Assembly (NCBI GenBank): GCA_964036045.1
Contig: OZ038378.1
Span: 91,450,001 to 91,514,000, forward strand
Reading direction: 5' to 3'
DNA length: 64,000 nt
Source of the DNA: Eutreptiella sp. 'Long Island Sound 2002'
Taxonomy: Eukaryota > Protista > Euglenida
Positions 5,550-43,765 of the stretch are shown in pieces. Under the pieces are notes generated by a model. That model searched no databases and was not told the origin of the DNA. It saw only the letters and a list, made by a program, of their open reading frames with translations. The position numbers and the translations under genes are program-made. Each line of letters begins with the position of its first letter. Positions within the stretch are counted from its first letter, which is position 1.

Positions 5550-6289
5550 TACACAGCAGGGGTCTTATCAAAAAGCAGGTGACATACTCAGGATTACGAA
5601 TTTCCCCCAAAACAAGCGATTGGCAGTTCCCATGAGCAGATTAACAGTGGCAACTCAAACTAGGCTTCAAAACCCTTCATCAGCAACACTACCCTCATCG
5701 AGGTCCAATAGAGACTGTGTGTTGACGCCTTGTCCAACACGTCACCTTGCCACCCCTTCCGTCTCCCTCCCACTGTGTACACACATGCGCGCCTGTTGAC
5801 GGACACTCTGCACCGCCCCGGCGCCCCTGCGGTCAAATAACGCTGCACTGCGTTACTTTCTGCCAAGCATGTCCTCATGATAGGAATGTGATTATGTTAG
5901 TGGGCATCTGTTCGAAGGGGCACATGAGTGTCCAAAGTGGCAGTAAAGGCCTCATTGACCGAACTAGGGGAAACCAAAATTTGCAAACATTCCAAGCCCG
6001 GATCTGAAAAGTGGGAGCGGTCAATAGGTTGCGATAGTGGTAGTGGAAAGGAAAAGTCTTCAAGCCATAGCCAAAAAGGTAGAGGCCTTAGATTTTTGCG
6101 CTGCAGCGCGCAAACGGAACAATATCCCGCCTCACAACTTGTATGTGGGCCCATTACATTACGCTCAACCAAAGGCACGCTATCAGCGGGACTACTGGCC
6201 TGCAGCCTATCGTGCTCCTTCATACTAGCACGTGTCACCGACACAAACTAATCGAAACATTGCTCAACGGATGCCACAGCCACGTTGCA

Positions 6290-7883: not shown

Positions 7884-8489
7884 TGACCATCGTTGTCACA
7901 AAAGCCATCATCTTTGTGTGGATCATGTGATTTGAGAATTCAAACATAAATGTGTGTGCCCCAAAAACAAATTGGAAGAAATACACACACAAAGCAATTT
8001 TACACAAATAAACTGCGCTGGAGCGCAGTGCAATCAAACAATGAATTCAAATACACACCATATCGGTGATGAATGACCAATCAAAATCGAGTCTCCCGAA
8101 GGACACGTGTGCAACACAGAGAGGGGCATGAAACTCAAGAGATTTTGAAAAAGCGTGTCGCAACCCAATTTTGGGTTGGAAAAGGGTTTTGAAATACCTA
8201 TGCAACCATTGGCCAAACAAGCAATTTAAAAAAAGGCACTGTAGTGGATTGGATGTACAAATCCTGGCAATACCCCCCCCCCTCCAATGCAAATACACCC
8301 AGCTAGCGGCAATGTCGGAATGGTCTTTTGTTTTGCATGTTTTTTGTTTTGCTCCCCCCCCCTAACTATCCATATTGCGGATTGTGTAGGTTGTTACGTT
8401 ACCGCGATCCCATTCAGAAACACCAGTGCTTGTGTAGCTGCAAAATGATTGTCAAATCTAGTATTGAAAGCCATGGGAATGTGATACAA

Positions 8490-15744: not shown

Positions 15745-16296
15745 CCCACAGCCATTTTGATGTACGTGCTATCTTTGTGTGCTCCTCATCCTCCTATGGT
15801 CAGCCCCTTGGTGCATCCGACAACCTCTATCATGTGGCTTTCCACTATAATGGACACCCACCGCTTCGTTCTTGGCCGTGCCGGTTGCGGTTGCAGCGGC
15901 ATCACCCGCACTTACTTGGACTCATCTTGGTGTTCATGACCTGCATGTGGCGGACGAATTCCAGAGCCGTTGCTTGTAGCTCCTCCACCGAAGGCTCTAT
16001 GACCACCGTGTCATCAACCGCTGAAATCAACATCACCCGAACTGTCGCTTCTGCAAGGTGGACATGTACGCCTAGCCTAGTCCCGTGCATTGCTATGAAG
16101 AGCATGACCGTGTACAAGACGTAGAGCAGCGGGTCCATGCCTTCACCTTGCACCAACCCAGCTGCGATCTTGTCTAGGAGGGTGAGATCGTGCGCTGTTA
16201 CCATAGAGACCGGGACGAGGTTATGCAACGTCATTGCTTGCTACCCCAGGAACTACAAAATTGAATCGCAGCCTATCACCGCACTCATTGCACCTT
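15745..16296 (-). pseudogene. Non-LTR retrotransposon 1, RT domains 4-6 (3' part, right of the microsatellite)
   Basis: AAGLVQGEGMDPLLYVL resembles the G..QG..LSP motif, ISAVDDTVV resembles YxDD, and MNTKMSPSKC resembles the domain 6 N..KC motif. Confidence 0.8.
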
Positions 16297-16976
16297 CTTA
16301 GGCGGCTCTATACGCACGTAGCAAAATTGCCACAGCTCCCAAATGGGTACCACCCCAAAACGGGGGCTGAAAAACCACTTTGAAAAATTGCACAATTGTG
16401 CTTTGCAGAGAACACCCCAAAAAACCTGTGAATTATCCAAAATGACTGTGTGTAGGGGGTACAACATGTGCCAGTCAAAAGTCATGTATCCCCTTCAAAT
16501 TTGGGCACTGCAGTGTCCGTCCAAAGAAAAATCCAATTCTTCCAAATCATCCGCTGCTGCATTTCAAACCATGCCGTAAAATGCAACCTAAAAAATGAAG
16601 CAAGGAGGACGACATGCAAACACATGCAAAAGTCTGGTTTGCTTTTTGTTACCGCGTCTGCTGACCCAGTCACTGTGATTGTATGCGAAGCGTCAAGAAT
16701 GATGCACCACCAGTGGTGCCGACCAACAACGGAGGCGCCGCCAGTGGAGGCAATCCAATAATAAATGACAACAACAATGCCTGCAAAAGAAATGGCCCAG
16801 CAGGGGTAAAAAAAGGGCGAGTCGCTGAGTTTGGGCATTGCAGCGCCCAAAATTACCAAAACATGAAAAAGGGCACCAGTCTCACACCTGCATAGAACAG
16901 GACGCGCGACAGTGTGCAAATCGAGGCGAAAAAACTACTGACATGGTCACAGGCAGTGCCAACCGCACAACGCAGT

Positions 16977-17822
16977 CTACTTCTTCTTTGGTGGAGCCTT
17001 CTTACCCTTGGCCTGACCTACTTTGGCGTGAAACATATTGAGGGGGGTACTGTCCTTGGCCTTTTTGGCTGGCCTTTTGGGGGGATCATCAACCTCATCC
17101 CTACTGTCGTCGGAGGACGGCTTCTTCTTGCTGGGGGTGCTCCTCTTCTTGCTGTCACCACCTCCGACCAGCACGATCTCGTCATCCTCCTCTTCCTCCA
17201 CATCGTCCCCCCCCTCCTCATCTTCCCCTTCCCCAGGCCGCTGCACCACAACTGGCATACAGTCCCTAATCCTTGGCATCCAAGCGTCCCAGTTAACCAA
17301 GTAGACACAGTCCATCTCCTGCACATACGCCGCTAGCTGTTCACAGAACTCGTTAAACAAACCCTGGCGCCCAGTGAAGCAAGCTGCCAGACAGGGGGAC
17401 TCAGGAAGGCAGGACAGGAGCTGTGCTGGCAATACAGCCGATGCTGTCAAAAGCAGGAGCCAGACTTCATCCTCGGACTGTCTGTCGCGTCGGGGAACAA
17501 TACCAAGCACACGCAGGAGCCAACCAGCCGCCGCCAGACCAATGGTGCTGCCGTATGCACCCTGATCGCAAATGAAAATATTCGGGACCTTCACCCTAAA
17601 CTTGTCGGGGACACAGAAGCAAATAGTCCTCTCCTCGAACCGATAGGTCGGGTGACCGACTGCCTGATCAAAAAAAGAGGTCATAATATACTGCCAGCCT
17701 CCACACTCCTCAGAGTCGCGCAATTGATTAACTAGGAACTTAACGTCAGCCGCCATTCCACCAATAGCCACAGGTACCAACTTCGCAGCAACCTTCAGCA
17801 CCAGCGGATGGATATGGTCCAT
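16977..17822 (-). CDS. Element B accessory ORF-C, 281 aa, conserved N-terminal part plus acidic/Lys-rich tail; unknown function
   Basis: It is an uninterrupted ORF with homologs in A and E. The tail is D/E-rich, then has KK-rich NLS-like clusters. The true 5' end probably lies further upstream in a decayed region. Confidence 0.7.
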   Translation of the reverse strand: MDHIHPLVLKVAAKLVPVAIGGMAADVKFLVNQLRDSEECGGWQYIMTSFFDQAVGHPTYRFEERTICFCVPDKFRVKVPNIFICDQGAYGSTIGLAAAGWLLRVLGIVPRRDRQSEDEVWLLLLTASAVLPAQLLSCLPESPCLAACFTGRQGLFNEFCEQLAAYVQEMDCVYLVNWDAWMPRIRDCMPVVVQRPGEGEDEEGGDDVEEEEDDEIVLVGGGDSKKRSTPSKKKPSSDDSRDEVDDPPKRPAKKAKDSTPLNMFHAKVGQAKGKKAPPKKK

Positions 17823-18099
17823 TTGTTCCTTCGTACACTCAATGAAGACCTATTGTCAAAAGCACATTTCATTACAGATGGGCAATGCAGTGCCTAAAGT
17901 GACCAGCAATGCGAAATCGATCCCATTCTTATGCCTAATGGTTGCATACCGCTTTGTACTCCCTCAATGCAATCGTATAGAGGATAGCCTTGCCAGGAAC
18001 CAACGCAATTGCCTCTGCCCAAGCTCCGGTTGCTTCAGTCCCATCTTGCGGCTTGTTGAGCCAGATAGTTGTTGATTTCTGCCCATCAGTCGTTGTCAC

Positions 18100-19653
18100 T
18101 GCAGTTTCCTTGACAGGCCTCGCCGGCGCAATCCTCAGGTCAGCCCATTCCTCATCCTGCCACAGCGGTGGTTTCTGGATGGTGTCCCAGCTTGGTAAGG
18201 GATTTTCGGCACTCTAGGTCCATTTCCCCAGTGACAATTTGGCGGCCCTCGGCGACTTTGCAAGCAGTTTGAGGACTCTTTGCATTTCATGCACGTTCAC
18301 TGTTAGAACAGGAGACCACTGGTACCACTGGGATCGAAACAGCCTGGCGTCGTGGGTCCGGGGGGGGGGGGGGGGTCAACAGCGATCGCGCCAGACCCTG
18401 CCGCCCCATAAACATACGTCGAGAAGGATGGCTGAGCGTGTTGTCCGGGTAAAGGTATAGCATCTCCCACAGGCGGTCCCGCTTCAAGAGTCTGGCCTTG
18501 GCATGTAGTCCTGTGATCTTGGCTGCATCTCCAGCCATGTACAGCAATATTTCATCCATCTGGTCACTATGCAGTCCCGTCAACGGCCGCAGAGTGTAGG
18601 GATTGAGCACTGCAGTGCAAAAATTAGGGTCGCATCGAATTTGGGCACTGCAGTTCCCATGAACACCAAAAGACGACGAAAACAGGTGCTCGGAGGACAT
18701 AATACCTTCACCGGCAGTCTTCTCAAAGGTGTCAACAAACTCAGCCACGCGGCCACCAGATATCTGCAGTAATGAAACCAGCGGTCTCCAAATTTTCCAG
18801 ATTAAGTCCTGGCAGGGATACAGTGTTGGACAGGCCACAGGTACGCAAAGGACTGACAACGGTGGTCTCATCGTGCATCTCTCATAACACAGATGTTTTC
18901 TCGCCCAGTCGGCCACACTTCCGCAGAGCCACCAGCAGCATCTCTTTCGCTTTGCCCTTCTGCACTTCAGTCCAAATTCGAGCGGCCACTTGTCCCATAC
19001 TCAGCTTGCTCACTGAGTGTTGTACCGCATTGTGATCGCCTCCAATAATCTCTCTGATGTCAACAGGACAGTCGTGTCTGATCTCCTCACAGTAGACGTG
19101 TTGTAACCAGTCTGGCAGTGCCCGTGACTTCTCACAGTATTCTCGGTGAAGTCTTTGGAGTGCTGTCAGGATATGAGCCCCGCCCAAGCAGTAGGGAATT
19201 TCAGCTGATAGAAAAATGGACCACAGGGAGATGGGAGATGGGAGATATCAGCGAGATGGGCACTGCAGTGCCCAATTGACCAGACTGTGTCAAAATTACG
19301 ACGCGTGTGTGACAGGATGGTAGTGTACCTTCGTTTCGCCATATGAGAATGTTTGAGATAGGCCGGCAGGGTGGATTTGTCCTCAGGCTTGCGATCCGCG
19401 ATAGTACTGAGTCCTCGTCCCTCTCTCTGGTCTGCCCACGCGTGAGGTCGGTGTCAAACTTTATCTTGGTCAGCTGTATCTTGACCAGCTCCTTTTTGAT
19501 CCACGGTGCCCGGAATGTTTCCGTTGCCCGGTCGGTCCCCGTCCGCTTCACTGGAGCCTGCCCCGACTGCGCCCGTGTCTTCTCTGCTGTGTGAACGGCT
19601 TGCGATGCGGTCTGCTGCTCATCCCCTTCCGGCAGTTCGGTATCCGAAGGCAT
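18100..19653 (-). pseudogene. Element B accessory ORF-B (~500 codons over several frames); unknown function
   Basis: ORFs 19201-19653, 18882-19187 and 18287-18916, plus a tail to ~18100, each align to the A copy; the YT[LM]R and LW..HPSR segments also align to E. Confidence 0.8.
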
Positions 19654-20224
19654 AGCTCAGCAAAGGGGCTAACAAAGGGTCACACGACACACTACAAAAG
19701 GCCACAGGGCTGCAAATTGTTGATTTACAGGCTTCTAATGTTGATGACTACTGGGAGCGCTCGACGATTGAACACAGATGGCAGAAATAGCATCACAGTC
19801 GGATGCACCTGGTAAAAATCGAGGGTCAAACTCATTCAGCTCCGAAAGGACAGCCACGGGGGCGTCGGAATCATCACTGTGAACCGACACTGTTTCTGGA
19901 GGGGAGGGGGTCCGGGTCCCATCCATCATCACCCACAAAATCAGCAGCCCTCAGGTCTGGATCTCCGGCTGCCCCACCAGCATGGGGGGGGGGGGTCCTC
20001 ATCGCTGTCACTGTCGCCATCAGCATTGGGGGGGGGCGGGTATCCGGGCGGGGTCCCTTTGCGCAAAAGCGCGTGCTGGCCGGCGTCGCTTGTACCGGTC
20101 TGGTGTATTACATGCGCGTAACATGTCCTGTGCCTGTGCTACTGTTGTGTCCATATCACCTGGAGGACGCTGTGGCACGTGTCTACCCAGCTCTGTCATC
20201 ACATTAGCATCAACTTTAACAGGT

Positions 20225-22169
20225 TTAACAAGTGTCTGCAATGTCTTGGCACGTAGATCTCGGTAATGCTGCAGTGAGCACCGTATCTAGTGCGCAAGGA
20301 AAATCCATCTTGGCAGGATCCCACCTGTCTTGCACGATACTCGACCTTTGACTGGACCAGACCAGGGGGGGTATAACACCAACATCGAATCGCGCCATCA
20401 ATCTGGTGAACCGACGATCAACCAGTTGTGGCAGTCCCTTGGGAACATTAACGTACTGCAGGTCCTTTGGGGTCTGGTCTGCAACGGGAGTGAGTATAAA
20501 CAGGTCATGCACCTGTTGCAACGTACAGTTCCGAGGGTGTTGTGCCATTAAGTGCACAACACGGCTTAACAGGGCCTCACACGGTTCCTTACTGTGTGCC
20601 ACCCCAGGTAAGCGGGCAAAGCACTGGGACCACAACAGCCTAGCAACAACAATGGTGCGCACATATTCAACCTTGTCCTCATAACCTAGGGTGAGCCTCA
20701 GAAGGACGTGTAGACAACGGCTCAACAATGGCCCTGCAGCGTGCTGCTCTCCCTGTGCAGACCAATGACAATCCCTCACTTGCGACCCAATAATAAACAA
20801 GGCTGGAATGTAACCACACAGCAGTGTTACCAACCCTTGCACTTGTGTAAGAAGTGTGTCGGTGCAAACCCCTTAGAGTCTGTAACTTCTGTTCCAAAGG
20901 TTGGCGCCACTTATGGGCCAAGTGCAAGAGCACTAGAATCATACGCTCCATATAGATGAGTTTCGGAAAGTTGGGCACTGCAGTGCCCAAATTGAGTGAA
21001 CCATAGGAAAAATAGGTAAATAAAGGGAAGAATCTTCTGTAGCACAGGGTTACACAATATTTATATGGGTGCCATGTGCCGTACACTACCGGGGTACGTG
21101 TAATGAATAGGGGCACGTTGTACCGAGCATAGCTGATGCTGTAAACGAGCTTAAGGACACAGTAGTGAATATTTTCGTCGACCAACAATGGAAGACGGTG
21201 CTGTGTGTGCTGCTGCACCTCCTAGAGCCCGTGAATAATAGAGACAAGGTCGGGGGTGGCGGACACAGTTAGGTCTGTGAGAAAAAAGGGGGTCCAAGCT
21301 GGGCTGGTAACATTATCCCGTCGTATGTCCAAGGGACAACGAACTAGTTGAAGGCGGATGGGGTCGTCCATCAACCCTTGCAAGCCATCAATGAAGTTTT
21401 TATGGCTCTGCACCAACAAGTCTGCAGTGTACCCAATCCTCTGCCGCAAGACCGAGAGGCTAGGAAAAGACGGCATAATGTCGACAGGTCGTTTCAAGAG
21501 TATGATAGCACCAGCTGTACAATTAAGGGACCAGTTCTCATTACCAGGCACATGCCGGAAGTTACGTCTATAAAACTTATCAAACCATAGAACAGCGGGT
21601 TTACCTTCCAAGGTCTACCAAAGACTGGTGCAAGCAGTTGCGCCTTGAACTGCAAAGGAGGGTACATTGTAAGAACATTGACCCATGTGAGCCAAACACC
21701 TACCTTGCACACGACTCTTGGGTTGAACACCTACAGCCCTCTTGGCACGTGGACGACACCTCTTGTGTAGAAGAGACCATATATTAAAAATCTCTTGCTC
21801 AGCAACACGGAACCATTGGTCCGGCAGACAATTAACGGTCCGTCTGTCCCTTTGTTGGATGTATTCACCAACAGACCGCCTACTTCTCCACTCCAACCGG
21901 AGATCTAACACCCACGTACAAAACGCATCGGCACCCTTATCCACACCCACAGCCTCAGATAGATCCTCCTTTGCAGCATATACCTTCGAAATAAGGAACT
22001 GCCGGAAGGGAGCCGCATTCATGGACAAAAGTCCTGTTCGCAGGCAGCAAAGGTAAGGGGACAAAGAAAACATAGGCACCATCACAAAACAAACCTGATG
22101 CGGCATAGAGCAAAAGCAGCTAGCGAAGATCCAAACAATGTATCCCCCAATGGACGTGGGACGTTCCAA
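20225..22169 (-). pseudogene. Element B DDE-like transposase (~650 codons), Academ/DUF6589-like by motif layout
   Basis: ORFs 21615-22169, 21222-21611 and 20679-21218 share one frame and are separated by single TAG stops; a frameshift then leads into 20225-20842. Candidate catalytic motifs are WFD, LVDENI, GTWH and KEPCEAL. The family name is an inference. Confidence 0.8.
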
Positions 22170-22556
22170 AGCCTGGGTACACTTTAAGGTGGCAGTCAGA
22201 CAACCGGCAATATATTTCCAATGAGCAGAGGAGGAGTACCAACGTCCGATGATTCATACGTCCTTTGTCAGGTGTTACGCAATGGGAACCAATAGGAGTG
22301 AAATACGGAGTTTTCAAATTTTTGGACACTGCAGTGCCCAAAAGTACTGGAAGTCCATTTTGAAGTGCACATTTGGACACGAATGGAATTGATTGGGCAA
22401 GGTACATTGTACGTGGCCTTCCGAGTATAACACCGCGGTGCGATGACCCATGGATAACGGGTATGCCAAGGTTTGATGCATGCTGCTGCAGTATGACATC
22501 ACCTGTGGAGATGACTACAGAGGTGTACTGGAGAACCCACTGAAAAAAGCCATTTC

Positions 22557-22588
22557 AAATTTTTGGGCACTGCAGTGCCCAAAAATTT
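22557..22588. repeat. Perfect 32-bp palindrome aaatttttgggcactgcagtgcccaaaaattt, the best copy of the element-B motif
   Basis: Read directly. Other copies begin at 16503, 16833, 17880, 18605, 18643, 19258, 20973 and 22324. Confidence 0.95.
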
Positions 22589-22800
22589 TCAATGATACAA
22601 TTTTCAGCCCGGAATAGGGGGTGTATACGTACACCTCTGGAAGCAACAAAAGGCAAGTTTGTTTTATCCCACGATGAAAATCCACGTGGGGTTGGCCGAA
22701 AAAATGATATGCTTTTTTTAGGTGCAAAAAACGGATGTTGAAATCGCCATGAATCGTGCCTTTTAGCAACGAAGTCTACGTGCGTATAGAGCCGCCTAAG

Positions 22801-23300
22801 ACCTTGGTAAATGGAACCATACACATTAGATTGGTTAGTTTTCAGCACCGCCACTCCTAATCCTTGCTCACATTATGGAGAAAGCACTGGATGTGGGATG
22901 GGGACGGGCCTTTGAGGATCGCAAACTAACACCACACAAAGTGTGCCGGCACAAGCAGCTGAAACAGCAGCGTCGCCGGTGCCTAAGCACGCCTCATTCA
23001 ATCAAGATTGGCCGCGTGTTGGTAGTGAGATTGTCACCTAGGCGCTCCACCACTAGTATTTGTGGAGCCGTATGGGCCTCCTCAGGCGGCTACTCCGTTG
23101 TGCACATGAGCAGGTCACCCATCAGCATTAGTGTGTACGGGCCAAACGTCGTTGCTAGTGCTCAGCAGTTTCCGTCCCAGGTGGCTGCTCATGAAGATTG
23201 GTCACTGGACACTTGCAACAACTCCCTTGCGGTCATCATGCGGTGCATCGCTTGGTTGACTGCCCCCTTTGATTCTTTAATGGCTTGTTTTCTTGCAGCC
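22801..23300 (-). pseudogene. Non-LTR retrotransposon 1, RT domains 0-3 (5' part)
   Basis: PEEAHTAPQILVVERLGDNLTTNTRPILIE resembles the domain 1 RPI motif. AVLKTNQSNVYGSIYQG resembles domain 3 (D..nAfgsv). It joins in frame across B to AMSAVIG...MTLHNLV. Confidence 0.7.
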
Positions 23301-24010: not shown

Positions 24011-25853
24011 TCCATACCCTTAGGAGGCCCATAGTGCCCCCTATCGTTTTTTCAAAAAAAAAAAAAAAAAGATGTTGTGCACAGAGCCTAGCCTCTCGGC
24101 TTCATACCCAAGCATAATGGAGGGGTTGTTCCTAGCTAGGGTTTATGGGAAGGAGTAGTGATGCGCAATTTAGGGGTGCGAAGCCCAAAAAAAAAGCACC
24201 ATTTTGGGCCCCCACAACATGCGAGTGTAGCCACTGTTTTTTCCAATTTTTGGAGGTACGAAATACGGAAATTGGACCGGCAATGCCATAAAACTATGTT
24301 GCACAGTCTGAAATGACAAATGGTGCACGTATTTGTCAACGGCACGTGGCGCGGTTGGCCTAGCAATCATAGAATTGTGACGGCGATGATGACCATACAT
24401 CGACTGCTTGTGAAGAAGGTGTACCCCAGAATAACAGATAACAACGACTATGCAAAAGGAGGGTGTAAACAAGCCTTTTCGATAGGCTGGGCTCTGCAGG
24501 GCCCAAAACCAGGAAATTTCCTAAAAACATGTGTCACAATGCAGGGTTGCACACCAACACAACAAAGGCAAACAGGAAGTAACAGGGCCCAAAGTAGGGA
24601 ATTCTTATTGGTTGGGCTGTGCAAAGCCCAAATCAATAGAAACAACAGAAAGCAACCATCAATTACAATAATGATAAACACGCCGGACCACTAGTGTGGT
24701 AATAGGTACCATAAGCGGCGTACTGCATGGTCCTGCCCCCCCCCCCCCCATCCCCCGGAATTTCAGTCACACATATGCCAAAGACCACCACATCACCGGT
24801 CATAGACAAGGCATGGAAGCTGCATACATACTAGTCGACGAGTATGAAGCGCAAAAACACAGGAAACGAAGCACAAAAATTGTAAAAACCTTTACATGCG
24901 TTGTAGCAGGTCCGTCAAAACTCTAGAATTGGTGTTGTATTGACTACAGATTGATGTGTCACCAGATGTGGTTCATAAGCACCTACTAACACCGGGACAC
25001 ACAAAGCCTGTTTCCCATTCTAAATCCCTAGCAAATGAGAAATTATCAATCTCTGGTCGACACCAACGAAAACCGGTCACAAATGGCAGTAAAAAATGTA
25101 TCATCGCACATTGGGCAGTGGCAAAGCAGTGCCCAACATACGCACTGTCAACCGTTGGAGAAACAAAAAAGGCAAGACAGATCAATGAAAATGTGGCATA
25201 CATGACAACGCCAAATGTAACGTGGCCCAGCAAATAGTGGCAAACCTATGCCCCGCATACACACTGGTGATCGGACTCTGGGCATACTTGGTAAAGTCAA
25301 AATGACAGACACATTCGCTTGAGCTCTGTAGGGCCCAGGAACAGGTAATCAACCATGTCACGACTCAATCGAGGGATACTGCATCTGGGGTTTGTAGTAT
25401 ATGGGCTATTGAAAAAATAGCACATCAACAGTGCAACTAGGGTTCATAGACACATACCTGGCACCGTATATGCACCAAAATCGTGATCAAACTCGATAAT
25501 TTCTGCACTGTGTCAACGAGGGACGTACCAAATGAAATGCCATAGCACAGTGTTGCGTTCTTACAACCAAACTCATAGGGACAACACTACACTGCTGAGA
25601 TGAGGGCAACGTTCCAACCTTCTAGACGCCATGCACATTTGACTAAGACAGTATGTTGGGCTTTGCAGAGCCCAACAATACAAGATTCGTCATATTCGGG
25701 GGCAAATCAATCAAATCTGGAAGGCTGGGCTCTGCAGAGCCCAGCTCAGTGCAAACGGAAAAAAAGACATTCAAATTCCGTCACAAACCTGTACAGAGAC
25801 AAACAGGGCACATCGTTGACTGTCCCACAGTTGTTTGGGACTGCACAGTCACA

Positions 25854-26872
25854 TCAGGCCCACACCATTCCAGCACAGTCATGATCCAGCGATTCGTGGG
25901 GCCTCCAGTCACTTGCCGTTGCTTGTGCCGTTGCTCTTGGATAAGCCAACCCTGAGACCACGTTGTAGGGTAGCCTAGAGGTGGTGGAGCGCCCTTTTTT
26001 TCTGCGATGGAGATGCTGCACCAGCTGCCGTTGCCAATTTATTGTCTTCTTCTTTCCCCTTGCAATTTGCTCGCTCGTCCTCTTTGGCGTTTTTCTCCTT
26101 CTCCTTCTCCTCCTTTTTACTTTGCCGCTCCCGCGCCTCCTCTGGCTTCCACAACTCGCGCCGAGCCTTCTCGTGCTCCTTCTGCCGTTGTTTATTGGTT
26201 TTCCCTTCCAGTTTGGGAGTTGGCGGATCCGGCACCTCCACAATTTCTTCCTCACTAGTGTCCGCGTCAGCTGCCTGGTCAGGGGACTCGTGCTGCTAGA
26301 ACAGATGCTGAACAATGCTTGCCCAGTGCATGACACTCCGCCGCTCAATAACCTCCTCCGTGTCCCCTTTCCGGACGCTGTCTTCAGCACGTTCACCACA
26401 TCAGCTGCATTGTATGGACTATCAGATGATACACCCCATGCGCAATTCAACGGGACAGGCAAGTGAACACAACCCAAACTGATCAGGTCGGGGCGGCGGC
26501 CGTAGTACAGTGCCCACAGGCAGCGCGATGCATCAATATCCATGTGTGTGTCGCCCGTGTCGTCGTTTGGCCCTCCAAGGAATTCAACAACCACCACAGG
26601 ATAGCCAAACCCGGCCACAGACCTCCGGTGAACGACTTTTGCGTGAGGAAGTGCGGCACAGCAGTGCCGAGACCATGGGTCTTCACAAGCAACAAACTTG
26701 ACTGCTCGAATAAATACAGTTCTTCTTTGTGTCCCAAATGGTAGACAGGCATGCGCAAAGCTGCTGGGCATAAATCTTCCAAATCGGAACGTAAGTGTGG
26801 TTCCACAACAACCAAATCCTCATGGTGTCCATGAAAGGCGCCAAGTACGCATTGAGACAGCACACGCATCAT
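25854..26872 (-). pseudogene. Element E accessory ORF-C homolog with acidic/basic tail
   Basis: YLFEQSSLLLVKTHGLGTAVPHF...GLAILWWLLNSLEG aligns to B YRFEERTICFCVPDKFRVKVPNI...GLAAAGWLLRVLG. It has a KE-rich tail (25975-26241) and is frameshifted. Confidence 0.7.
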
Positions 26873-27123
26873 CTGCGCACCAGGAATCCAGCCTCCTCGC
26901 TAGGAGATTTCAACGATGACGAGATGGTACCTCATGATTTTGATCTCATTGGGCACTGCAATCACTGATCCATCGTACACCCAAATTTCTCCAGATTTTG
27001 TGCCCTGCCCACATTCACCTTGGTCTACATTTGCCGCCTCGCCATCGGACGACTCAAAAGGCGGGTTTGACACTGGTCTCACAAGCAGTCTACGATGTCT
27101 CTTCGACATTTTCTCGATCGCCG

Positions 27124-29667
27124 ACCCACAGACCTGCCTTCAACAGCGCCTGGAGCGGTGGCCATGGAGCGGACTCACTCTACTCCCAGCTCCCTTGCCA
27201 TGCACCAAAATTCGCTAGATGGTGACCAAACTTCTTCGAGATGCGAGCCACTTCAGCCTTAGTGCCTGTGTGCACAGGAGCAGAGGAGAGCACCTTGTAA
27301 CAGGATCAAGCGATCCACAGGGTCAAAGTGATGTGGCACAACGTAAATTTGCATTCCTTGGGATCCCAGGCTCTACAAAGTCCTGCACTCTAAAATCGGG
27401 AATCTGACGGCTAACATCCGTCAATGTGCTTGATCTAGGCTCTGCAGAGCCAAGCATGACCAAAATGGTGAATTAGGGGGTGTCTGAGGAGGGGGGGGTC
27501 CTCCTACATCATCACGCACGGTTGCACCATTCAACAGCAGTGAAATGGCGGACGTTCCAGCAGGCAGAGTGTCCGTGTAGATCCAGTCAATTGGCTTCCG
27601 ATGGGATCGTGGGCTCTGCAGAGCCCAGTAATTTCAAATTGGTAATATGACGGCTGAAATTGGTCAATGTGCTAGATCTGAACTGTGCAGAGCCCAGCAT
27701 GCACAAAACGGGAAATTAGGGGGTGTCAGCGGGGGGGGGGGGGGGTCATTGGACAGCATTAGGCAAGGTGGCACCAGTCAACATCCGTGAATAGCGGAAG
27801 TTCAAACAGGCACAATGTCTCTATAGATCCACTGAAGTTGCATGCCATGGGATCCTGGGCTCCGCAAAGGCCAGCAAACTCAAATTGCTTGGTGACACAT
27901 TGAAATCGGTTATTACACTTCATCTACGCACCCTGTTGTAGCGGCCCATTGAATCGGAGTTGCATTACAATGTCCCACAACGAAAGGCAGGGAGCTTACC
28001 AGGCAATAGCATACATCTTGAAGGGTGGATGCACTGAACCTGCATGTCGGGATGACCAAAGTGATGCCACCACAATTCCCTAGCGCGGAGCTCCTTTGCC
28101 AGCTTCCGAAAGCTTGGTACTGTACTCTGCGGCGAGGCCATGTAGTTGCATACGCACGACAAATTTTCAGGTTGCATTCCAGCGAAGCATCGCATTGTAT
28201 AAAGGGCAATCACCTTCTTGCGTTCCGGCATCTTGCCGAGTGTGTCCGTGAAGGTGGGCATCACGGCCATATGGGCAGCTGGCGTCATTTGCTTGACGAT
28301 TGTCACCGTGTTGCCAGATTTCCTACTCAGCGCCGCCTCCACGATTGCCTCACACATCAAGTTGACAATTGTCTTCTTACATTGTGTGTCCTGACCAAGG
28401 CGGCTGACGACACACAGTGTAAGAAGTTGATGTGTGAGGCAATCGTGGAGGCGGCGCTGACTAGGAAATCCGGCAACACCGCGACAATCGTCAAGCAAAT
28501 GACGCCAGCTGCCCATATGGCTGTGATGCCCACCTTCACGGACGCACTTGGCAAGATGCTGGAACGCAAGCAGGCGATTGCCCTTTATACAATGCGATGC
28601 TTCGCTGGAATGTAACCTGAAAATTTGTCGTGCGTATGCAACTACATGGCCTCGCCGCAGAGCACAGTACTACGCTTTCGGAAGCTGCAAAGGAGCTCCG
28701 CGCTAGGGATTCGTGGTGGCATCACTTCGGTCATCCCAACATGCAAGTTCAGTGCATCCACCCTTCAAGATGTATGCTACTGCCTAATAAGCTCCCTGCC
28801 TTTCGTTGAGGGACATTGTAATGCAACTCCGATTCAATGGGCCGCTATGACGGGGTGCCTAGATGAAGTGTAATAATCAATTTCAGTGTGACACCAAGCA
28901 ATTTGAGTTTGCTGGCCTTTGCGGAGCCCAGGATGCCATGGCATGCAAATTCAGTGGATCTATAGAGACATTGTGCCTGTTTGAACTTCCGCTATTCACG
29001 GATGTTGGCTGGTGCCACCTTGCCTAATGATGTCCAATGACCCCCCCCCCCCCCCCCCCGCTGACACCCCCTAATTCTCCATTTTGTGCATGCTGGGCTC
29101 TGCACAGTCCAGATCTAGCACATGGACCAATTTCGGCCGTCATATTACCAATTTGAGCGTACTGGGCTCCGCAGACCCCACGATCCCATCGGAAGCCAAT
29201 TGACTGGATCTACACGGACACTCTGCCTGCTGGAACGTCCGCCATTTCACTGCTGTTGAATGGTGCAACCGTGCGCGATGATGTAGGAGCCCCCCCTCCC
29301 CCCCCAGACACCCCCTAATTCACCATTTTGGTCATGCTTGGCTCTGCAGAGCCTAGATCAAGCACATTGACGGATGTTAGCCGTCAGATTCCCGATTTTA
29401 GAGTGCAGGACTTTGTAGAGCCTGGGATCCCAAGGAATGCAAATTTACGTTGTGCCACATCACTTTGACCCTTTGGATCGCTTGATCGTGTTACAAGGTG
29501 CTCTCCTCTGCTCCTGTGCACACAGGCACTAAGGCTGAAGTGGCTCGCATCTCGAAGAAGTTTAGTCACCATCTGGCGAATTTTGGTGCATGGCAAGGGA
29601 GCTGGGGGTAGAGTGAGTCCGCGCCATGGCCACCGCTCCAGGCGCCGTTGAAGGCACATCTGTGGGT
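27124..29667. repeat. 2.5-kb fold-back inverted duplication, arms ~1.27 kb, spacer ~18 bp near 28400
   Basis: The centre reads cttcttacattgtgtgtc-ctgaccaaggcggctgac-gacacacagtgtaagaag. The ORF MVTKLLRDASHF...KSGI appears on + at 27219 and on - ending at 29384. The arms are similar but not identical. Confidence 0.95.
27913..28390 (-). pseudogene. Element E accessory ORF-B fragment (mirrored at ~28410-28873 on +)
   Basis: YTMRCFAGMQPENLSCVCNYMAS aligns to B YTLRPLTGLHSDQMDEILLYMAG. LRARELWWHHFGHPDMQVQCIHPSRCML aligns to B LKRDRLWEMLYLYPDNTLSHPSRRMF. Confidence 0.75.
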
Positions 29668-30054
29668 GCATGGGGCCTTGGCTCTCCTCCTGAGCGACAT
29701 TGGGGTCCCGGAGGAGCTAATAAAGCCCTTTCATATCCTTAGCTGCGGCTCCACGGTGCGCATTGTTACAGCGCACGGTCCCGACCCAAACATCCGCCTC
29801 CATCGGGGCCTACGGCAGGGCAACGCGTAAAAAGCCGTGCTCTACCTGTTCCTCCTAGAGCCCCTCATGCGGAGCTTTGCCCGACGAACCCAAGGGGATG
29901 CCCGCCACGTGGGGCCGCCCCTGGTACAAGCGTATTGTGACGACCTCTTGCTAATAGCGCACTCCTTGTCGCGGTTCGTGGAGTACGGAGGGGCAGTACT
30001 TGCCATACATTGGCATGTCCCTCAATGTTGGGAAATGTGCGTACGCCACTACAA
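29668..30054 (+). pseudogene. Non-LTR retrotransposon 2, RT domains 3-6 (5'-truncated)
   Basis: It reads HGALALLLSDIGVP, RLHRGLRQGNA*, LYLFLLEPL, VQAYCDDLLLIA and GMSLNVGKC, with one stop and one frameshift. Confidence 0.9.
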
Positions 30055-30381
30055 CCCTTGGTACACGCTAGAAGACCCAGTCTCGATTTAGCCTAGAACA
30101 CTCTAGCCTATATGTTCTAGCCTAGATTAGATCAATACTAGAACAATATAATGTCTACCCAGATGTGCAAATTTCTTCATTGTTCCCCCGTGCATGCTTG
30201 CTATTGTCCGCAGTTCATTGTTCCATGTTTCCTTCTCTCGCGCTTAGATATTACACATTTCTTTGCAACGAAACGCCCCGCCACGTCCCCCCGTGCTCCA
30301 TCCTCAACCGGGAAGGATACTTCCCTCTTGTCTAAGGCACTATGGGACTCTAGTGGGGCTTAAAACCTCAAGGATGAGCGG

Positions 30382-31700
30382 GTGGGCCATTACTTGGCCA
30401 CGTGGGCGCTATCATGCCCCCTAGCACGGCGGCAATTCAACAACGCCGTCCAATATGTGAACTCCGCCAATTCTACTCACATCACGGGTAAGGCATGCAA
30501 GGTCGCCATTGAGGCATACACCGGCTCCCTTCTCCCCCCCACCGCCATGTGTGAACTAGTGCTCAACATGAGGGCCCCCAGGTCCTCGTGGAGGACCCTC
30601 TCGGAGCTCTACACGCTCTGTAAGTTGGAGTACCAACGCACCGTCCCCGGTGGCCCCTACTCCCGCCCAATTTGTACCGAGCGGGGTTTGCAAGCCCGTT
30701 GGAAAGAGTTGGTCGCCCTCGTGCAATTGGATGAGCCCGTTGCCACGGTGTTGCCCAAGGCCACCAGGAGCTCATGGCCCTTCGCCTCATGGGTCACATA
30801 CATCCTCTCGCGGCCGGGCTTGGTGCGGTCAATCAACCGCAACTTCCCGTTGACGTTCATCATCTGGGGAGATGCCTACCCCGTGGCCGGGGGCAATTGT
30901 ACCCAACTCACTATCTCCTTGGCCAACTTCGACCACTTGGCCCGCTCCCCCGCGGGCCTTTGGGTGTTGAGCATGACCAATTGCGATGACAAGGCCATGG
31001 ACACCCTTGGGACGTTGTGGAAGAGCAATTGGGAGGTAGGCCTCTCAACTAGTGCCTTTCGCTCGTTCTAGCTTTGATCTAGTTAGCCTCGAACACCGCT
31101 CGCTAGAAGCCAGATTACACTAGACTAGAACGAAATTAACCACCCCCCATGTCTCGTGTTTAGGTGATTCAAGACATCATCGACACATGGCTCGTCCAAT
31201 GGGGGGCCTTCAAGGAGGAGGCAAAGGTGATCCTCGGGGGGGATCAACCGTGGACACGAAGGGTGATCGGGGTGTCCACCTGCCCCCAAGTGGGCTCTAT
31301 GTTCAATGGGGGGATATGGAATGCCCAAAAGAAGATTAATTAAGGGTAGTGCTATCCGGCGGACCATGGAGGGTGATGAGGCCAACTACACGGCCTTCCT
31401 CCTTGGGACGCCTTCCTTGCAAGCCGCTGGCTGCTGTACGCAGCGGATTTTGAAAATGCCACGTGCATGGGTCGTCTTGTGCATTTTGCACTTGACAATG
31501 GCCATGGGCCGCGTTTTGGGGAAGTTTGTCGACCGGAAGGCTAGGTCGGTCACCCCTGCTCTCCGTCAAGGCCAATGTGCAATCGCAGTGCATGAAATGG
31601 CTGTTTGCATACTTTGACGTGTCGTGGGTTGTGCACGGCGGGCCGCGGTCGCAAGTGCCATGCTCGGGCAGGGATGCCATGGAGGTAAGGAGGGGCTTCC
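30382..31700 (+). pseudogene. Element D transposase, RAG1/Transib/Chapaev-like, two exons (intron 31036-31163); C-terminus missing or decayed
   Basis: D1 is FIIWGDAY. The in-frame splice WKSNWE|VIQDII leads to D2 KVILGGDQPWTRRVIG. After one frameshift comes the C-x2-H motif LCILHLTMAMG. Confidence 0.75.
31036..31163 (+). other. GT-AG intron 1 of element D
   Basis: gag|GTAGGC...gtgtttAG|gtg is phase 0 and joins the reading frames. It contains gttctag and ctagaacg motifs. Confidence 0.8.
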
Positions 31701-31779
31701 CTCAACCAGAATATTGACCAACAACATGGCATCGAAGGAGTTGATCGACGAGCTGATCCGCCAAATATCTGGCCTTGTT

Positions 31780-31913
31780 GTGCGCTCTGGCGCTGATCTA
31801 GGGAGGCGTTCTAGCGTTGATCTAGGCAGCATAGTTGGTCGCTAGAACGTCGCTAGAACACCGCTAGAACGGCTGCGTAGAGCGCCACTAGAACGCTCCT
31901 GTGTTTTCTATAG
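31780..31913 (+). other. GT-AG intron 2 of element D (alternative donor GTAAGG at 31685)
   Basis: The acceptor is gtgttttctatAG at 31913. The interior has gttctag/gatctag copies followed by ctagaac copies. The donor is uncertain. Confidence 0.6.
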
Positions 31914-34170
31914 AATCAGGCGACCCAAGCGTTGATTGCGCAGATGAGGCGGAACAGGCGCAGGAGCAGGAGGAGCAGGCCCCGCCGAAGGCCTAGCAGG
32001 TCGAGGCCAAGCCCAAGGCCGCGGCCAAGCCACCCCCCCTCGCCAAGCCCAAGGCCAAGCCCCAGCCCCAACCCCAAGCCCCAGATCCACCATCGCCACC
32101 CCCTCACCTGTTGGGGGCCAGGAAGTCGGCGGCGGCGGCCCCGGAGGACACGGAGGACACAGAGGTGAAGGAAATGCGGGGGGAGCTCCGAGGGCTCTCG
32201 GCTTCCCTCGCAGCTCAGAAGGCGGGAAAAGGCTAGGGTGGAGAGCAAGGTCTCCCTATGGGAGACCAAGCTGGCGGAGGTACGGAGGATTGGGGATGAG
32301 GAGGGGATCCGCATGGCGGAGGACACTGTCCGCAAGCCGAGGGCCAAGGTGGTGTGCAAGGAGAAGGGGATCCAGGCGCTGGATCGCAGCGTGCGGAGGA
32401 TGGAGGTGGTGTTGGCGGCGGCGGTGGATAATGTGAAGGAGGAGGTGGAGGAGGTGGTGGAGGTGGACGTGGAGCCGTAGGAGATGGAGGGGGAGGCGGT
32501 GAAGAACGAGGTGGAGGCAAAGGTGGTGGTGGAGACGCCGGCGGCGGGGGGGGTGAGCAAGTGGCTCGGGGCGATGATGGGGCTGAGAAATGCGGGGGCC
32601 ATGTAGGACTTGCCATGGGACCCGGCTAGCCTGGCTGGCCCCCACCCCCCAAAACTGGACACCCCCCCCCTCGCCGCCCCGGAGAGGCCGATTTGGACTC
32701 TCCGGCTTTTGTTGCAGCAGGTGCACCACCAGCTGTTGGGGAGGGGCGGTGGGTATGGGTGGATGAGGGGGGGGTGGTCCAGCTGGACAAGCCCGTGCGG
32801 CTACGGGTGGTCAAAGGGTGGTGGGGGTGGCAATAGGAGTTGCCGGGGGCGGGGAAGAAATGGGGGGAGACGCCCCGCCCCCCCCGGAAATGGGGGTGAA
32901 GATGTTTGAGTTGGCGCAAACCAACCGCTTCACCCCCGAGAGGAAAAGGGGGGGGGGGCCACCCAGTGGCGGTTCGTCGCCAATTGGGCGGGATGGAGTA
33001 TAGGGTGATGGCTTGGACTTGCACACAGACCTGGTCGGCGCGGATGCACATGGGGGGTTTCAACCCGGAGGCGGCGAACCGGGGGGCGTATGCCGGGTTG
33101 GTGGACGGCATCGCCTCCCGGCCCAATTCCAAGCCCAAGCCCGGCGCGACCCCCGTTGGGGGCCCCCTGCAGCCGCACCCCCCCAAGCCCCGGGACGCCT
33201 TCGGCAAGGCCCTGGGGGCCATCTTTCCCGCACTGGACCGCCAAGGCACGGTATGTTGATTGCGGTCGAGCGTTGATCTAGCGAACCGTTCTAGCGTTGA
33301 TCTAGCAACCACCGTTCCGCCGCCGCTAGAACGCCGCTAGAACAGTTGCCTAGAACGCCACTAGAACACACCTGCACTATGTTTCTGTTCTCAGGTTGCC
33401 AGCGTGCGGAGGTGTGGAGCCGACCACCGCGGGGTGCGCGTGAAGTAGCGTGATGGCGCAGGCCGGACGCGGCTCGTGGGGGTCACCGAGTTGGGCCGGT
33501 TGATGGGGACGGACCCCAGTTTGGCACTCTCGGTGCCGGACGGTTTGGTCAGGTGGGAAGCGTCAGCAGCAGCAGCAGCAGCAGTAGCACCACCAACGGG
33601 GGGAGGTCCCGCCCCCCCCCCCAAGGCCCCCAAACCCCCCCCAAGGCCCCAATGAAAAAAACCCGCTTCGAGATTAGCGACGAAGACGCCCCCCCCCCCC
33701 CCCAGCCCAGCACAACAAGCCCAAGGCCAAGGCCAAGCCCAAGGGCAAGGGCAAGGGCAAGGCCAACCCGCCCCCAAATCCCAAGCCCCCCCCTTGCAAG
33801 ATAGGGGCCGGGACCACTATGGGAATGTGCCGGGTGTGGGGGACACCCGGTATGTCCCTTGGGAGGAGGGGGGCAGTGGGGGGACCGTTAGCCAAATAAT
33901 GGTGTTGGGGGATTGGGATGAGGAGTTGGACCCGGAGGAGTGGTGGGTGGTGTCGCAGGGGTCCAATGGGGAGGGGGGGAAGAAGGGGAAGAAGGGGAAG
34001 AAGAGGAAGCGGGAGCAAGAGGGGGGCACCTTCCAGGTGGCGGGGGAGCTCCTCTTCCGCACCAAGGAGGAGGCAGAGGCCCGCCTCCGAGAGGCCATGG
34101 GGGGGGGACGACGGGGACGACAGGGATGACGGGGATGCTGAGGGGGACGAAGGTAACAAGGGTGACAAGG
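31914..34170 (+). pseudogene. Element D second, low-complexity/coiled-coil accessory coding region (intron 33251-33394)
   Basis: GC-rich frames include ESKVSLWETKLAEVRRIG...EVDVEP and RDAFGKALGAIFPALDRQGT|VASVRR, with several stops and frameshifts. Confidence 0.5.
33251..33394 (+). other. GT-AG intron 3 of element D
   Basis: acg|GTATGT...gtttctgttctcAG|gtt is phase 0. The interior has gatctag/gttctag copies followed by four ctagaac copies. Confidence 0.8.
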
Positions 34171-34864
34171 GGGTGGGGGTGTGGCAAGGTGGGTGAGGTG
34201 GGGGGTGACACGTGGGGTGAGAAGGAAGGGGACACGGGGGACGAAAAGGGGGGTGCCGGGAGCAAGGATGAGCCCCGGCAACACCCCACCACGCAGCAGG
34301 GGTGGCTTGCGTGTCGCGACTCGCGAATGGCGGCCTTGGTGGGCAGGCAGCTAACCATGCTAATCGGGCTAACCCACCACCAAGTGACCAGGCGCCGGCC
34401 CGCCAAGTGACCTTCCAAGTGACCTATGGGGTGCGGTGGGGGCTAACCGGGCTAACCGGGGGGGGGGAGGCGGCGCTCCGTGAGTCGGGTCCGGCATCGG
34501 GACCCTGTGACTGGCCACGGCTAGCCATGGTAGCCGGGTCAGCTTCTCTTTGAGGAGTGGCGGAGCATTCATATATATTGTTCTAGCGGCGCTCTAGCGA
34601 ACCGTTTTGGCGGCGTTCTAGGTGCACTCGCTAGAACGTCGCTAGAACGCCGCGAGAACGAAAATTTTCTGGACTCCAAAATCAGCTGAAAACAATGAAA
34701 TTGTGAGAAAAAAGAAAGTATGGGCCCCCGAGAACGGATAGGGGGGTCCAGGTTAGACACCTCAAATCCCCCCCCACGCGGGGGGGGGCGTCTTTTTTTC
34801 GTTCTAGCCGCTCTAGCGGGTCCTACGCTAGAACGAGATTGGGTCTTCTAGCGTGTACCAAGGA

Positions 34865-42534: not shown

Positions 42535-43765
42535 AGGTGCCCATAGGCCCCCATAGGCCCCCATGGGCCCCCAAAGGTGCCCATGGGTCCCCAAAGGTGC
42601 CAATAGGTCCCCATAGGCCCCCATAGGCCCCCATAGGCCCCCAAAGGTGCCCATGGGTCCCCAGAGGTGCCCATAGGTCCCCAAAGGTCCCCCTAGATGC
42701 CAATGAGTCCCCATCGACCCCCATAGGTCCCCATAGGTCCCCAAAGGTGCCCATAGGTCCCCATAGGTCCCCACAGGCCTCCACAAGCCCCCATAGGTCC
42801 CCATAGGTCCCCATAGGCCCCCATAGACCCCCAAAGGTGCCCATAGGCCCCCATAGGTCCCCATAGACCCCCAAAGGTCCCCATAGGCCCCCGTAGGCCC
42901 CCATAGGCCCCCATAGGCCCCCATAGGTCCCCCTAGATGCCGATGAGTCCCCATCGGCCCCCATCCCCATAGGTGCCCATAGGTCCCCAAAGGTGCGCAT
43001 AGGTCCCCAAAGGTGCCCAAAGGTCCCCATAGGTCCCCAAAGGTCCCCGTAGACCCCCATGGGCCCCCATAGGCCCCCCATAGGTCCCCATAGGCCGCCA
43101 TAGAACCCCATAGGTCCCCATAGACCCCCATAGGTCCCCAAAGGTCCCCAAAGGTCCCCATAGGCCCCCATAGGTCCCCAAAGGCCCCCATAGGTCCCCA
43201 TAGAGCCCCATAGGCCCCCATAGGCCCCCATAGGCCCCCAAAGGTCCCCATAGGTCCCCATAGGTCCCCATAGGTCCCAATGGCCCCCATAGGCCCCCAA
43301 AGGTCCCCACAAGCCCCCATAGGTCCCCATAGGTCCGCATAGACCCTCATAGGCCGCCATAGGCCCGCATAGGTCCCCACAAGCCCCCACAGGTCCCCAT
43401 AGGTCCCCATATGCCCCCATAGGTCCCCATAGGCCCCCAAAGGTCCCCATAGGCCCCCATAGGTCCCCATAGGCCCCCATAGGCCCCCATAGGCCCCCAT
43501 AGACCCCCATAGACCCCCATAGGCCCCCATAGGTCCCCATAGGCCCCCATAGGTCCCCATAGGTCCCCACGTGCCCCCATAGGCCCCCATAGGCCCCCAA
43601 AGGTCCCCATAGGCCCCCAAAGGTCCCCATAGGCCCCTATAGGTCCCCATAGGCCGCCATAGGCCCCCATAGGTCCCCATAGGCCCCCCTTGGCCCCCAT
43701 AGGTCCCCATAGGTGCCAATAGGCCCCCATAGGTCCCCATAGGCCCCCATAGGCCCCTATAAGTC
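42535..43765. repeat. 10-bp minisatellite (AGGYCCCCAT)n, ~120 units
   Basis: Directly visible; it generates the stop-free GPMGTYGGLW ORFs on the minus strand. Confidence 0.97.

Follow-up and report, generated by a model that had tools for sequence, protein, structure and literature searches.

Repeated binding motifs inside transposon ends are already known, and family-private motifs within introns have been described from one plant system. The BED domains of Hermes recognize subterminal repeats, with two domains cooperating on a quasi-palindromic pair of repeats (PMC10368747). The VANC21 protein binds a family-private 9-bp motif in the non-coding parts of VANDAL21, including the introns of accessory genes, and motif and protein co-evolve (PMC5735166). 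A Myb-like protein of Harbinger binds a 9-bp subterminal motif (Harbinger3_DR; PMC9710019), and a report on En/Spm presents TnpA as a transposon-encoded, sequence-specific regulator (10.64898/2026.08.24.746577). Here we describe a 16-bp palindrome, GGGCACTGCAGTGCCC, that is repeated in element B, a DNA transposon located in a stretch of 64,000 nucleotides (hereafter, the window) of Eutreptiella sp. 'Long Island Sound 2002' (assembly GCA_964036045.1, contig OZ038378.1, positions 91,450,001 to 91,514,000 of the forward strand). We consider it rather probable, judging from sequence comparisons, that the palindrome serves as a lineage-private docking site on double-stranded DNA for an element-encoded symmetric dimer.

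Copies of the palindrome in element B

The palindrome occurs as three exact copies in the window (19258, 20973 and 22565), with another three copies at one mismatch (16503, 18643 and 22324) and two at two mismatches (16833 and 17880). A ninth copy, at 18605 (GAGCACTGCAGTGCAA), is partial. An earlier examination of this DNA from its letters alone (the sequence-only reading) had counted nine copies, which we retain as eight firm copies and a partial one. All of them lie within element B (16297-22800), the firm copies spanning 16503-22580. When up to two mismatches are allowed, the chance expectation for the window is 0.06 based upon dinucleotide shuffles, none of which held more than one copy. 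The clustering of the palindrome in B is confirmed as real and far above chance. The consensus dyad of B reaches 20 bp (ttGGGCACTGCAGTGCCCaa), and the flanks of the copies have in common only A/T-rich extensions of this dyad. The copies, listed without a strand, are as follows:

16503-16518: subterminal palindrome L1, one mismatch, 207 bp from the left end (motif search; orthologous sites in L001 and L002, two copies of B introduced below)
16833-16848: subterminal palindrome L2, two mismatches, 537 bp from the left end (motif search; homologous site in the relative L006)
17880-17895: intronic palindrome, two mismatches, one mismatch in L001 (motif search)
18605-18620: partial palindrome, whose CTGCAG would give the 3' splice site of the 18610-18705 intron (motif search and splice reading)
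18643-18658: intronic palindrome, one mismatch, identical at 16/16 positions in L006 (motif search)
19258-19273: intronic palindrome, exact (motif search)
20973-20988: palindrome in transposase codons, exact (motif search and protein alignment)
22324-22339: subterminal palindrome R2, one mismatch, located 5' of the transposase gene at 477 bp from the right end
22565-22580: subterminal palindrome R1, exact, 236 bp from the right end, with a dyad symmetry of 28-32 bp

Four of the eight firm copies are subterminal, three are in GT..AG introns and one is in codons. Several copies are found within a few hundred bp of each end, inside the terminal inverted repeats (TIRs), which is the placement of subterminal repeats.

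A word search with a piece of the transposase as the query matched 33 proteins at 47-95% identity, and ten loci (L001-L010) were fetched from these matches, all of them in one ENA assembly. L002 is a full-length copy of B (94% identity), L001 is 96% identical to B with an internal deletion, and L003-L005 are partial copies, while L006 has 68% identity to B over the length of the element and retains homologous palindrome sites. The termini CTTAGGCGG...CCGCCTAAG are common to all fetched copies of B, and target site duplications (TSDs) of 5 bp are present in other B copies as well (ATATG/ACATG in L001 and AGTGA/AGTGG in L002). Based upon the shared termini and the 5-bp target duplication, element B, which is 6.5 kb in length, was delimited as follows:

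16297-22800, genes on the minus strand: element B, a decayed full-length, three-gene, cut-and-paste DNA transposon (common termini and identity of relatives)
16297-16321, plus strand: left TIR, 25 bp (inverted-repeat search and comparison of termini)
22776-22800, minus strand: right TIR, 25 bp (inverted-repeat search and comparison of termini)
16292-16296, no strand: left TSD copy ACCTT, 5 bp (flank comparison)
22801-22805, no strand: right TSD copy ACCTT, 5 bp (flank comparison)

The B family is high-copy, based upon a cluster of 169 near-identical members found for the open reading frame (ORF) of gene 3. The same eight palindrome sites occupy orthologous positions in L001-L005. At up to two mismatches, the B-type motif was found at 32 sites in 28.3 kb of B-family copies (1.13 per kb) versus four sites in 227 kb outside the family (0.018 per kb), and all four of these are in the related elements E and L006. 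Across all of the DNA fetched, none occurred in unrelated DNA, so an equal frequency of the motif inside and outside the family, which the sequence-only reading had named as grounds for abandoning its proposal, is ruled out.

Private palindromes of other lineages

In every relative that was examined with enough flanking DNA, a palindrome of another sequence was found at comparable places. That the motif is confined to one transposon, as had been claimed, is correct for the B-type motif, which is private to its family, but each lineage of the superfamily has a palindrome of its own. Element A, L007 and L010 share the type ACGCGCTGCAGCGCGT, and element E has 13 copies of GGGCTCTGCAGAGCCC from 24489 to 29339. 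The features of A and E are:

1101-1116, no strand: element A variant GCGTGCTGCAGCGCGC; further A copies at 6096-6111 and 8013-8028
24019-29700, plus strand: element E, a rearranged, non-autonomous relative (left terminus CTTAGGAGGCCC)

A gene-2 remnant of E is located at about 28004-28213, and a right end of E was not found. The 305-residue ORF of E was rejected as evidence on the family, since it is not homologous to the B genes. An E-type terminus (CTGAGGAGGCCC, minus strand) is present at 23074-23085, 285 bp to the right of B and opposite in direction to the left end of E (24019). Another family member may end there, in which case B may have inserted beside or within that member.

An exhaustive protein search returned 531 representative relatives, the full-length members of which have 650-840 residues, and five short contigs were obtained from a metagenome scan. 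L011, from an unrelated sediment metagenome, has the gene order of B at 30-50% protein identity, together with an intact transposase of 747 residues. It carries 11 copies of TCGCTCCATGGAGCGA, four of which form an array with 69-bp spacing upstream of the start codon. The others comprise one copy in the coding tail of the transposase, two between exons, one pair in the intron homologous to that holding the 19258 copy of B, and one pair in the counterpart of that holding the 17880 copy. The short metagenome contigs show the same pattern: CGGCGAGGCCTCGCCG occurs seven times in L013, once within the transposase ORF, and L012 and L014 have four copies of the GGGCGCGATCGCGCCC type and three of AGGAGCGATCGCCCCT, respectively. 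The shuffle maximum for the palindrome counts of L011-L014 is 1-2. No significant repeat family was found in L015.

Adjacent palindromes are 67-69 bp apart in E (25658/25727, 27611/27680 and 29095/29164) and in L011 as well (508-715, 3722/3789 and 5605/5673). Occurrence of this distance in both elements suggests that it is a preferred spacing, not a chance duplication length.

Alignment of eight lineage consensuses revealed that G3, C4 and C6, with their mirror bases G11, G13 and C14, are shared almost throughout, with single exceptions in L006/L008, L012, L013 and L014. This gives the skeleton NNGCNC....GNGCNN, in which the two conserved GC dinucleotides are 10 bp apart. Pairs 1/16, 2/15, 5/12, 7/10 and 8/9 vary between lineages, and do so symmetrically. 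Symmetry runs through the center in all four core types (TGCA, CATG, GGCC and GATC), and symmetry through the central four bases, which would be expected for a symmetric dimer on duplex DNA, is the main reason that a duplex binding site is preferred over an RNA or cruciform structure.

These cores also bear on the proposal, made in the sequence-only reading, of a modification site around CTGCAG. In a wider form of this proposal, the central hexamer would be the target of a methyltransferase or of a nuclease that resembles restriction enzymes. All of the cores are 6-bp palindromes, CTGCAG has four CHG cytosines, and several decayed copies show a change of TGCAG to TGTAG. However, the core varies by lineage (CTGCAG, CCATGG, AGGCCT or CGATCG) and the conserved part is the flanking GCNC skeleton, and protein scans returned no methyltransferase or nuclease domain besides the DDE core. 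Because the cores differ between lineages, modification is unlikely as a general explanation, and we give it scarcely any credence.

A palindrome without function, spread by copying bias (such as short-patch gene conversion between dispersed copies, or slippage in subterminal arrays) and simply tolerated, would fit the 69-bp and 243-bp periods in the arrays of L011 and E, which point to duplication. It would also fit the concerted changes at multiple sites in L006/L008 (see below), which are what conversion would give. Copying bias nevertheless leaves unexplained why copies are present in the same introns in distant lineages whose palindromes are wholly different, and why the GCNC skeleton and the symmetry are kept through sequence turnover. 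We consider this explanation highly improbable.

Introns and codons that hold the palindrome

Introns were read from sequence logic and from comparison between lineages, and are accordingly described as putative or probable. The genes of B and the introns that hold a palindrome are:

20225-22022, minus strand: gene 1, DDE transposase (alignment and predicted fold)
16977-19653, minus strand: genes 2 and 3, accessory proteins, with at least four probable introns, three of them with a palindrome (ORFs and alignments)
17850-17949, minus strand: putative GT..AG intron of 100 nt, preceding the final exon of gene 3 and holding the 17880 copy
18610-18705, minus strand: probable in-frame GT..AG intron of gene 2, 96 nt, holding the 18643 copy
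19205-19328, minus strand: putative first intron of gene 2, 124 nt, holding the 19258 copy

The frame shifts across each of the introns holding the 17880 and 19258 copies, and stops are present in all frames of the minus strand. Homology to A and E starts exactly past the 18610-18705 interval. A probable intron near 18765-18851 is without a palindrome, so not every intron has one. In gene 2 of B, a homopolymer run at 18351-18377 reads as poly-proline; G/C homopolymer runs of 14-19 bases recur across the window (also at 2317-2343, 27719-27745, 29041-29064 and 53364-53380) and probably give rise to frameshifts.

The first intron of gene 2 is common to B, L006, L008, L009, L010, L011 and A. All of these have the palindrome of their own lineage in it, with the exception of A, which has a degenerate remnant only. 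The types are GGGCA.. in B, ACGCG.. in L010, ACGTG.. in L009 and TCGCT.. in L011, and the palindrome is positioned ~55-60 nt past the 5' splice site in B, L006, L008, L009 and L010. The remainder of this intron is unalignable between the B and L010 lineages. Similarly, the L011 interval homologous to 17850-17949 has its own palindromes at 5605 and 5673. Within the three motif introns, motif bases are kept more often than other intron bases, both between B and L006 (40/48 versus 151/245, p = 0.002) and between B and L008 (26/32 versus 103/171, p = 0.017).

Intronic placement raises the possibility of a hairpin in RNA or single-stranded DNA, such as a pre-mRNA structure in introns or untranslated regions that controls splicing or intron retention. 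Three of the four internal copies of B are intronic, at 47-56 nt past the 5' splice site, the arms co-vary, and the 18610-18705 intron, with 96 nt, keeps the frame and has no stop, so that it could be retained. A hairpin would not require the central four bases to be symmetric, yet they are so in all four core types, for which the chance is about (1/16)^4 were loops free, and specific bases (GC at 3-4 and 13-14) are kept in nearly every lineage, beyond what complementarity demands. Inspection of the sites showed no sense-strand excess of G.U over A.C mismatches, although the numbers are too small to decide the matter. Arrays upstream of the start codon in L011 and copies in the gene-poor element E also speak against a hairpin, as do stems of just 6-8 bp, and we judge this explanation to be very unlikely.

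The copy at 20973 reads TTG GGC ACT GCA GTG CCC AAC (L-G-T-A-V-P-N) in the transposase frame, which is open there, and precedes the invariant glutamate by ~9 residues. The sequence-only reading had described the palindrome as written inside codons, which holds for this copy, but it is the sole codon copy among the eight or nine. Its statement that the copy aligns without a gap to A, which lacks the motif, agrees with our alignment, in which L010 and L007 also align ungapped and without the motif at the site. The peptide there is AGKLVPS in L010 and L007, and the matching alignment column of the L011 transposase has PGTAVPS. Since PGTAVPS is present in the distant L011 at the same column, GTAVP is taken to be ancestral and the EEYELPT of A to be derived. 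The ungapped alignments indicate that the coding copy was gained by substitution. Gain or loss by substitution, as proposed earlier, therefore stands, but A represents a diverged state, not the ancestral one.

The template for GTAVP, nGGnACnGCnGTnCCn, is self-complementary at all ten of its fixed positions. In B, all six free positions match the motif, and the Leu and Asn codons lengthen the dyad to 20 bp. The corresponding codons of L011, CCT GGA ACT GCG GTG CCA, already have 12 of 16 positions as in the motif of B, and the two 16-mers differ at the third position of three codons and at the final base of the codon before them. The coding copy of L006 and L008 is GGGAGC.., with the left arm as in their intronic copies, so this sister lineage has altered its coding copy together with the intronic ones. 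The coding palindrome of L013 (RGEASP) is ungapped versus L012 (EHRAQP), and that of L011 (SLHGAN) is in the coding tail of the transposase; both are at positions other than that of B. By these alignments, coding copies arose three times independently and without insertions or deletions, in B, L011 and L013. Selection on the DNA itself, which the sequence-only reading had proposed, is borne out by the match at all six free positions, by the coding copy of L006/L008 tracking the intronic copies, and by the independent coding copies of L013 and L011. The DNA at 20973 was thus tuned in its own right, at a place where the peptide made the site cheap. Nowhere else is the element as well conserved as in this stretch, in which B and L006 are 88% identical.

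The B-type arms (GGnAC / GTnCC) coincide with the GTAVP codons (20973-20988; L011 ~1856-1870). The B motif could even be derived from the GTAVP coding stretch, although a derivation in the other direction is as conceivable.

Two other origins of the coding copy were rejected. A 78-nt in-frame intron (GTGTAA...CTGCAG) is discounted by A, L010 and L007, which align through the interval as protein. An inserted micro-element, similar to a miniature inverted-repeat transposable element or a repetitive extragenic palindrome, would change the length, and the coding copies are ungapped in B versus A, L010 and L007 and in L013 versus L012. Arrival as an insertion with a TSD, which the sequence-only reading had named as a finding that would count against it, was likewise not seen.

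The transposase, the proposed docking site and known systems

Gene 1 of B carries two in-frame stops (21615-21617 and 21222-21224) and a frameshift near 20872, which disable it. In an alignment of 33 sequences, D149, D283 and E360 are invariant. The AlphaFold model of the transposase (predicted local distance difference test, pLDDT, 83; predicted template modeling score, pTM, 0.77) combines a DDE core of the RNase H type with an insertion domain made of alpha helices, as in P-element/hAT enzymes. Its structural matches are the P element (6pe2; Z 9.6 over 291 residues), Hermes (4d1q; Z 8.7) and Tn5 (Z 8.7), with weaker matches to Transib (Z 6.8) and RAG1 (Z 6.5). Because the best structural matches are all DDE transposases, gene 1 is predicted to encode a DDE transposase, of a family that is outside Pfam. 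No Pfam match was obtained for any ORF of B, L001, L002 and E or for ten full-length relatives, and no full-length relative carries a name. Neither sequence signatures of the P-element/hAT superfamilies nor an N-terminal finger of the THAP or BED type was seen, and the TSD is 5 bp in place of 7-8 bp. A profile search of the PDB by sequence returned nothing below E = 0.16, and an embedding search with the transposase piece and gene 3 gave no usable lead, the best named matches being fungal domains of unknown function at 0.87. The 5-bp TSD is as in Transib, but the termini are CTTAGG, not CACTATG, with which Transib termini start, and the structural match is weaker than those to the P element and Hermes.

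In the mechanism we propose, a two-fold symmetric, element-encoded dimer would dock on the duplex palindrome. The dimer could be the transposase, acting through its helical N-terminal domain of ~140 residues, or one of the accessory proteins. Each half of the dimer would read one conserved GCNC half-site, the conserved GC dinucleotides, 10 bp apart, being presented on one face of the helix. The variable positions (1/16, 2/15, 5/12, 7/10 and 8/9) would set private specificity, which would keep related elements of the same genome from cross-reacting. Near both ends, copies would recruit the protein for end recognition and synapsis, and intronic copies may be auxiliary enhancer-like or regulatory sites, located where a 16-mer can be accommodated without a change of protein. 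In the transposase exon, which spans ~2 kb and has no intron, the site may have been written into codons at tolerant spots. The sequence data show the distribution of the palindrome, its conserved positions, symmetric co-variation and skeleton, the tuning of codons and the DDE fold of gene 1, while we infer binding by a protein, the identity of that protein and the effect of binding. The site could serve transposition, self-regulation or both.

Several points weigh against a docking site of this kind. When folded alone, the N-terminal domain is predicted with good confidence (pLDDT 89), but it has no significant structural match (Foldseek E >= 1.9, best Z 4.1), so a role in DNA binding is hypothetical for it. 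No DNA-binding domain was found in the proteins of the element, and the accessory proteins had no Pfam match among the scanned ORFs of B, L001 and L002. Conserved intronic placement is not known for transposase binding sites and could mean that the site acts in regulation or at the level of RNA. Full symmetry is lacking in the consensus of L006/L008, GGGAGCTGCAGTGCCC. Lastly, the 13 copies of the non-autonomous E, of which only the left end was located, are a weak argument for docking.

An accessory protein encoded by the element might instead bind the motif for self-regulation or anti-silencing, activating or de-repressing its own family as VANC does on VANDAL elements, and not for transposition. 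The architecture of VANDAL21 is alike, with three genes, a family-specific motif in non-coding DNA and a co-evolving binder (PMC5735166). In the elements described here, the 5' region and the introns are filled with copies, the variants are private to the lineages, and divergence is faster in the accessory genes than in the transposase core (26-31% versus 44-50% identity between B and L011). Nevertheless, no VANC-like protein was detected by Pfam, the transposase is not Mutator-like, and E, without intact genes, still has 13 copies. VANC motifs are also short, non-palindromic, dense and in one orientation, whereas the motif here is a 16-20 bp dyad at low density. A purely self-regulatory site is therefore, in our estimation, unlikely.

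Returning to the docking site, a broader reading may be advanced tentatively. It is possible that these elements form an unclassified DDE superfamily with a self-recognition code, in which each lineage stamps its subterminal DNA and introns, or its codons where non-coding DNA is lacking, with a private 16-20 bp dyad on the GCNC skeleton that is read by a co-evolving dimer. As part of this reading, placement in particular introns would predate the split of the lineages, down to ~30% protein identity. If it is correct, many lineages could coexist in one genome without cross-mobilizing or cross-regulating each other.

Other repeats were observed in the window. An element at 30056-34863, delimited by a 51-nt inverted repeat, has 11 exact copies of CGCTAGAAC (0.14 expected), and its ORFs had no Pfam match. 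The copies form clusters at 31808-31870, 33288-33343 and 34580-34648, two of the three being internal, and each cluster has one copy in inverted orientation beside two or three direct ones that are spaced by 11 bp; a single copy at 34826 is within the right arm of the inverted repeat. A private motif deep inside an element may be common in this genome. Tandem repeats of 10 bp make up an array of ~1.3 kb at 42445-43700, under long overlapping minus-strand ORFs. A degenerate repeat field at 55880-57610 has a 47/94-bp period and units that are 60-74% identical. A satellite extends from 61971 to the end of the window at 64000 with a period of ~600 bp (609, 592 and 606) and 82-92% identity, and includes the perfect palindrome CAGGACGATCGTCCTG.

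Hermes, whose transposase has a related fold (Z 8.7), and other hAT elements likewise have short motifs, private to the family, that are repeated at both ends internally to the TIRs. However, the Hermes motif is 4-5 bp and near the tips, whereas the motif here is a 16-20 bp dyad that is also present kilobases inside the element, in introns and codons; moreover, the elements described here have no BED finger, and their TSD is 5 bp. PIF/Harbinger elements use a separate element-encoded protein that reads a short repeated subterminal motif, which would be analogous to docking by an accessory protein. Harbinger and En/Spm transposases match Pfam families, while gene 1 does not. Copies embedded in introns or codons do not appear in the descriptions of Harbinger and En/Spm, as far as these were checked. 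The palindrome resembles HIP1 and uptake signals, to which the sequence-only reading had likened it, in being short and also present in coding sequence, and three metagenome lineages have a GCGATCGC core. Those signals are genome-wide, whereas the B motif is absent from unrelated DNA in 227 kb and differs by lineage.

VANDAL elements are alike in having three genes and a private motif in accessory-gene introns and upstream of the transposase gene, and in the variation of the motif between related families. The VANC motif, from Mutator-like VANDAL elements of Arabidopsis, is 8-9 bp, non-palindromic and in dense tandems of the same orientation, while here the transposase family is another one and Pfam detected no VANC-like protein. 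Arrays with 69-bp spacing are present in L011 and E, whereas the copies of B are dispersed and single, and a palindrome has no orientation. Apparently new are a full dyad that undergoes complete sequence turnover while its symmetry, a six-base skeleton and specific intron placement are kept, a palindrome written into transposase codons at least three times independently, and a transposase family that is not covered by Pfam, of which public data include 531 representative relatives. If binding were confirmed, the lineages would provide a natural series of matched protein-site pairs for studying the co-evolution of specificity and target and the separation of mobile elements, as well as a simple sequence signature for annotating the superfamily. 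The case combines features of transposase binding sites with those of the VANC type, and differs from both in its long dyad, low density, intron placement, codon copies and transposase family.

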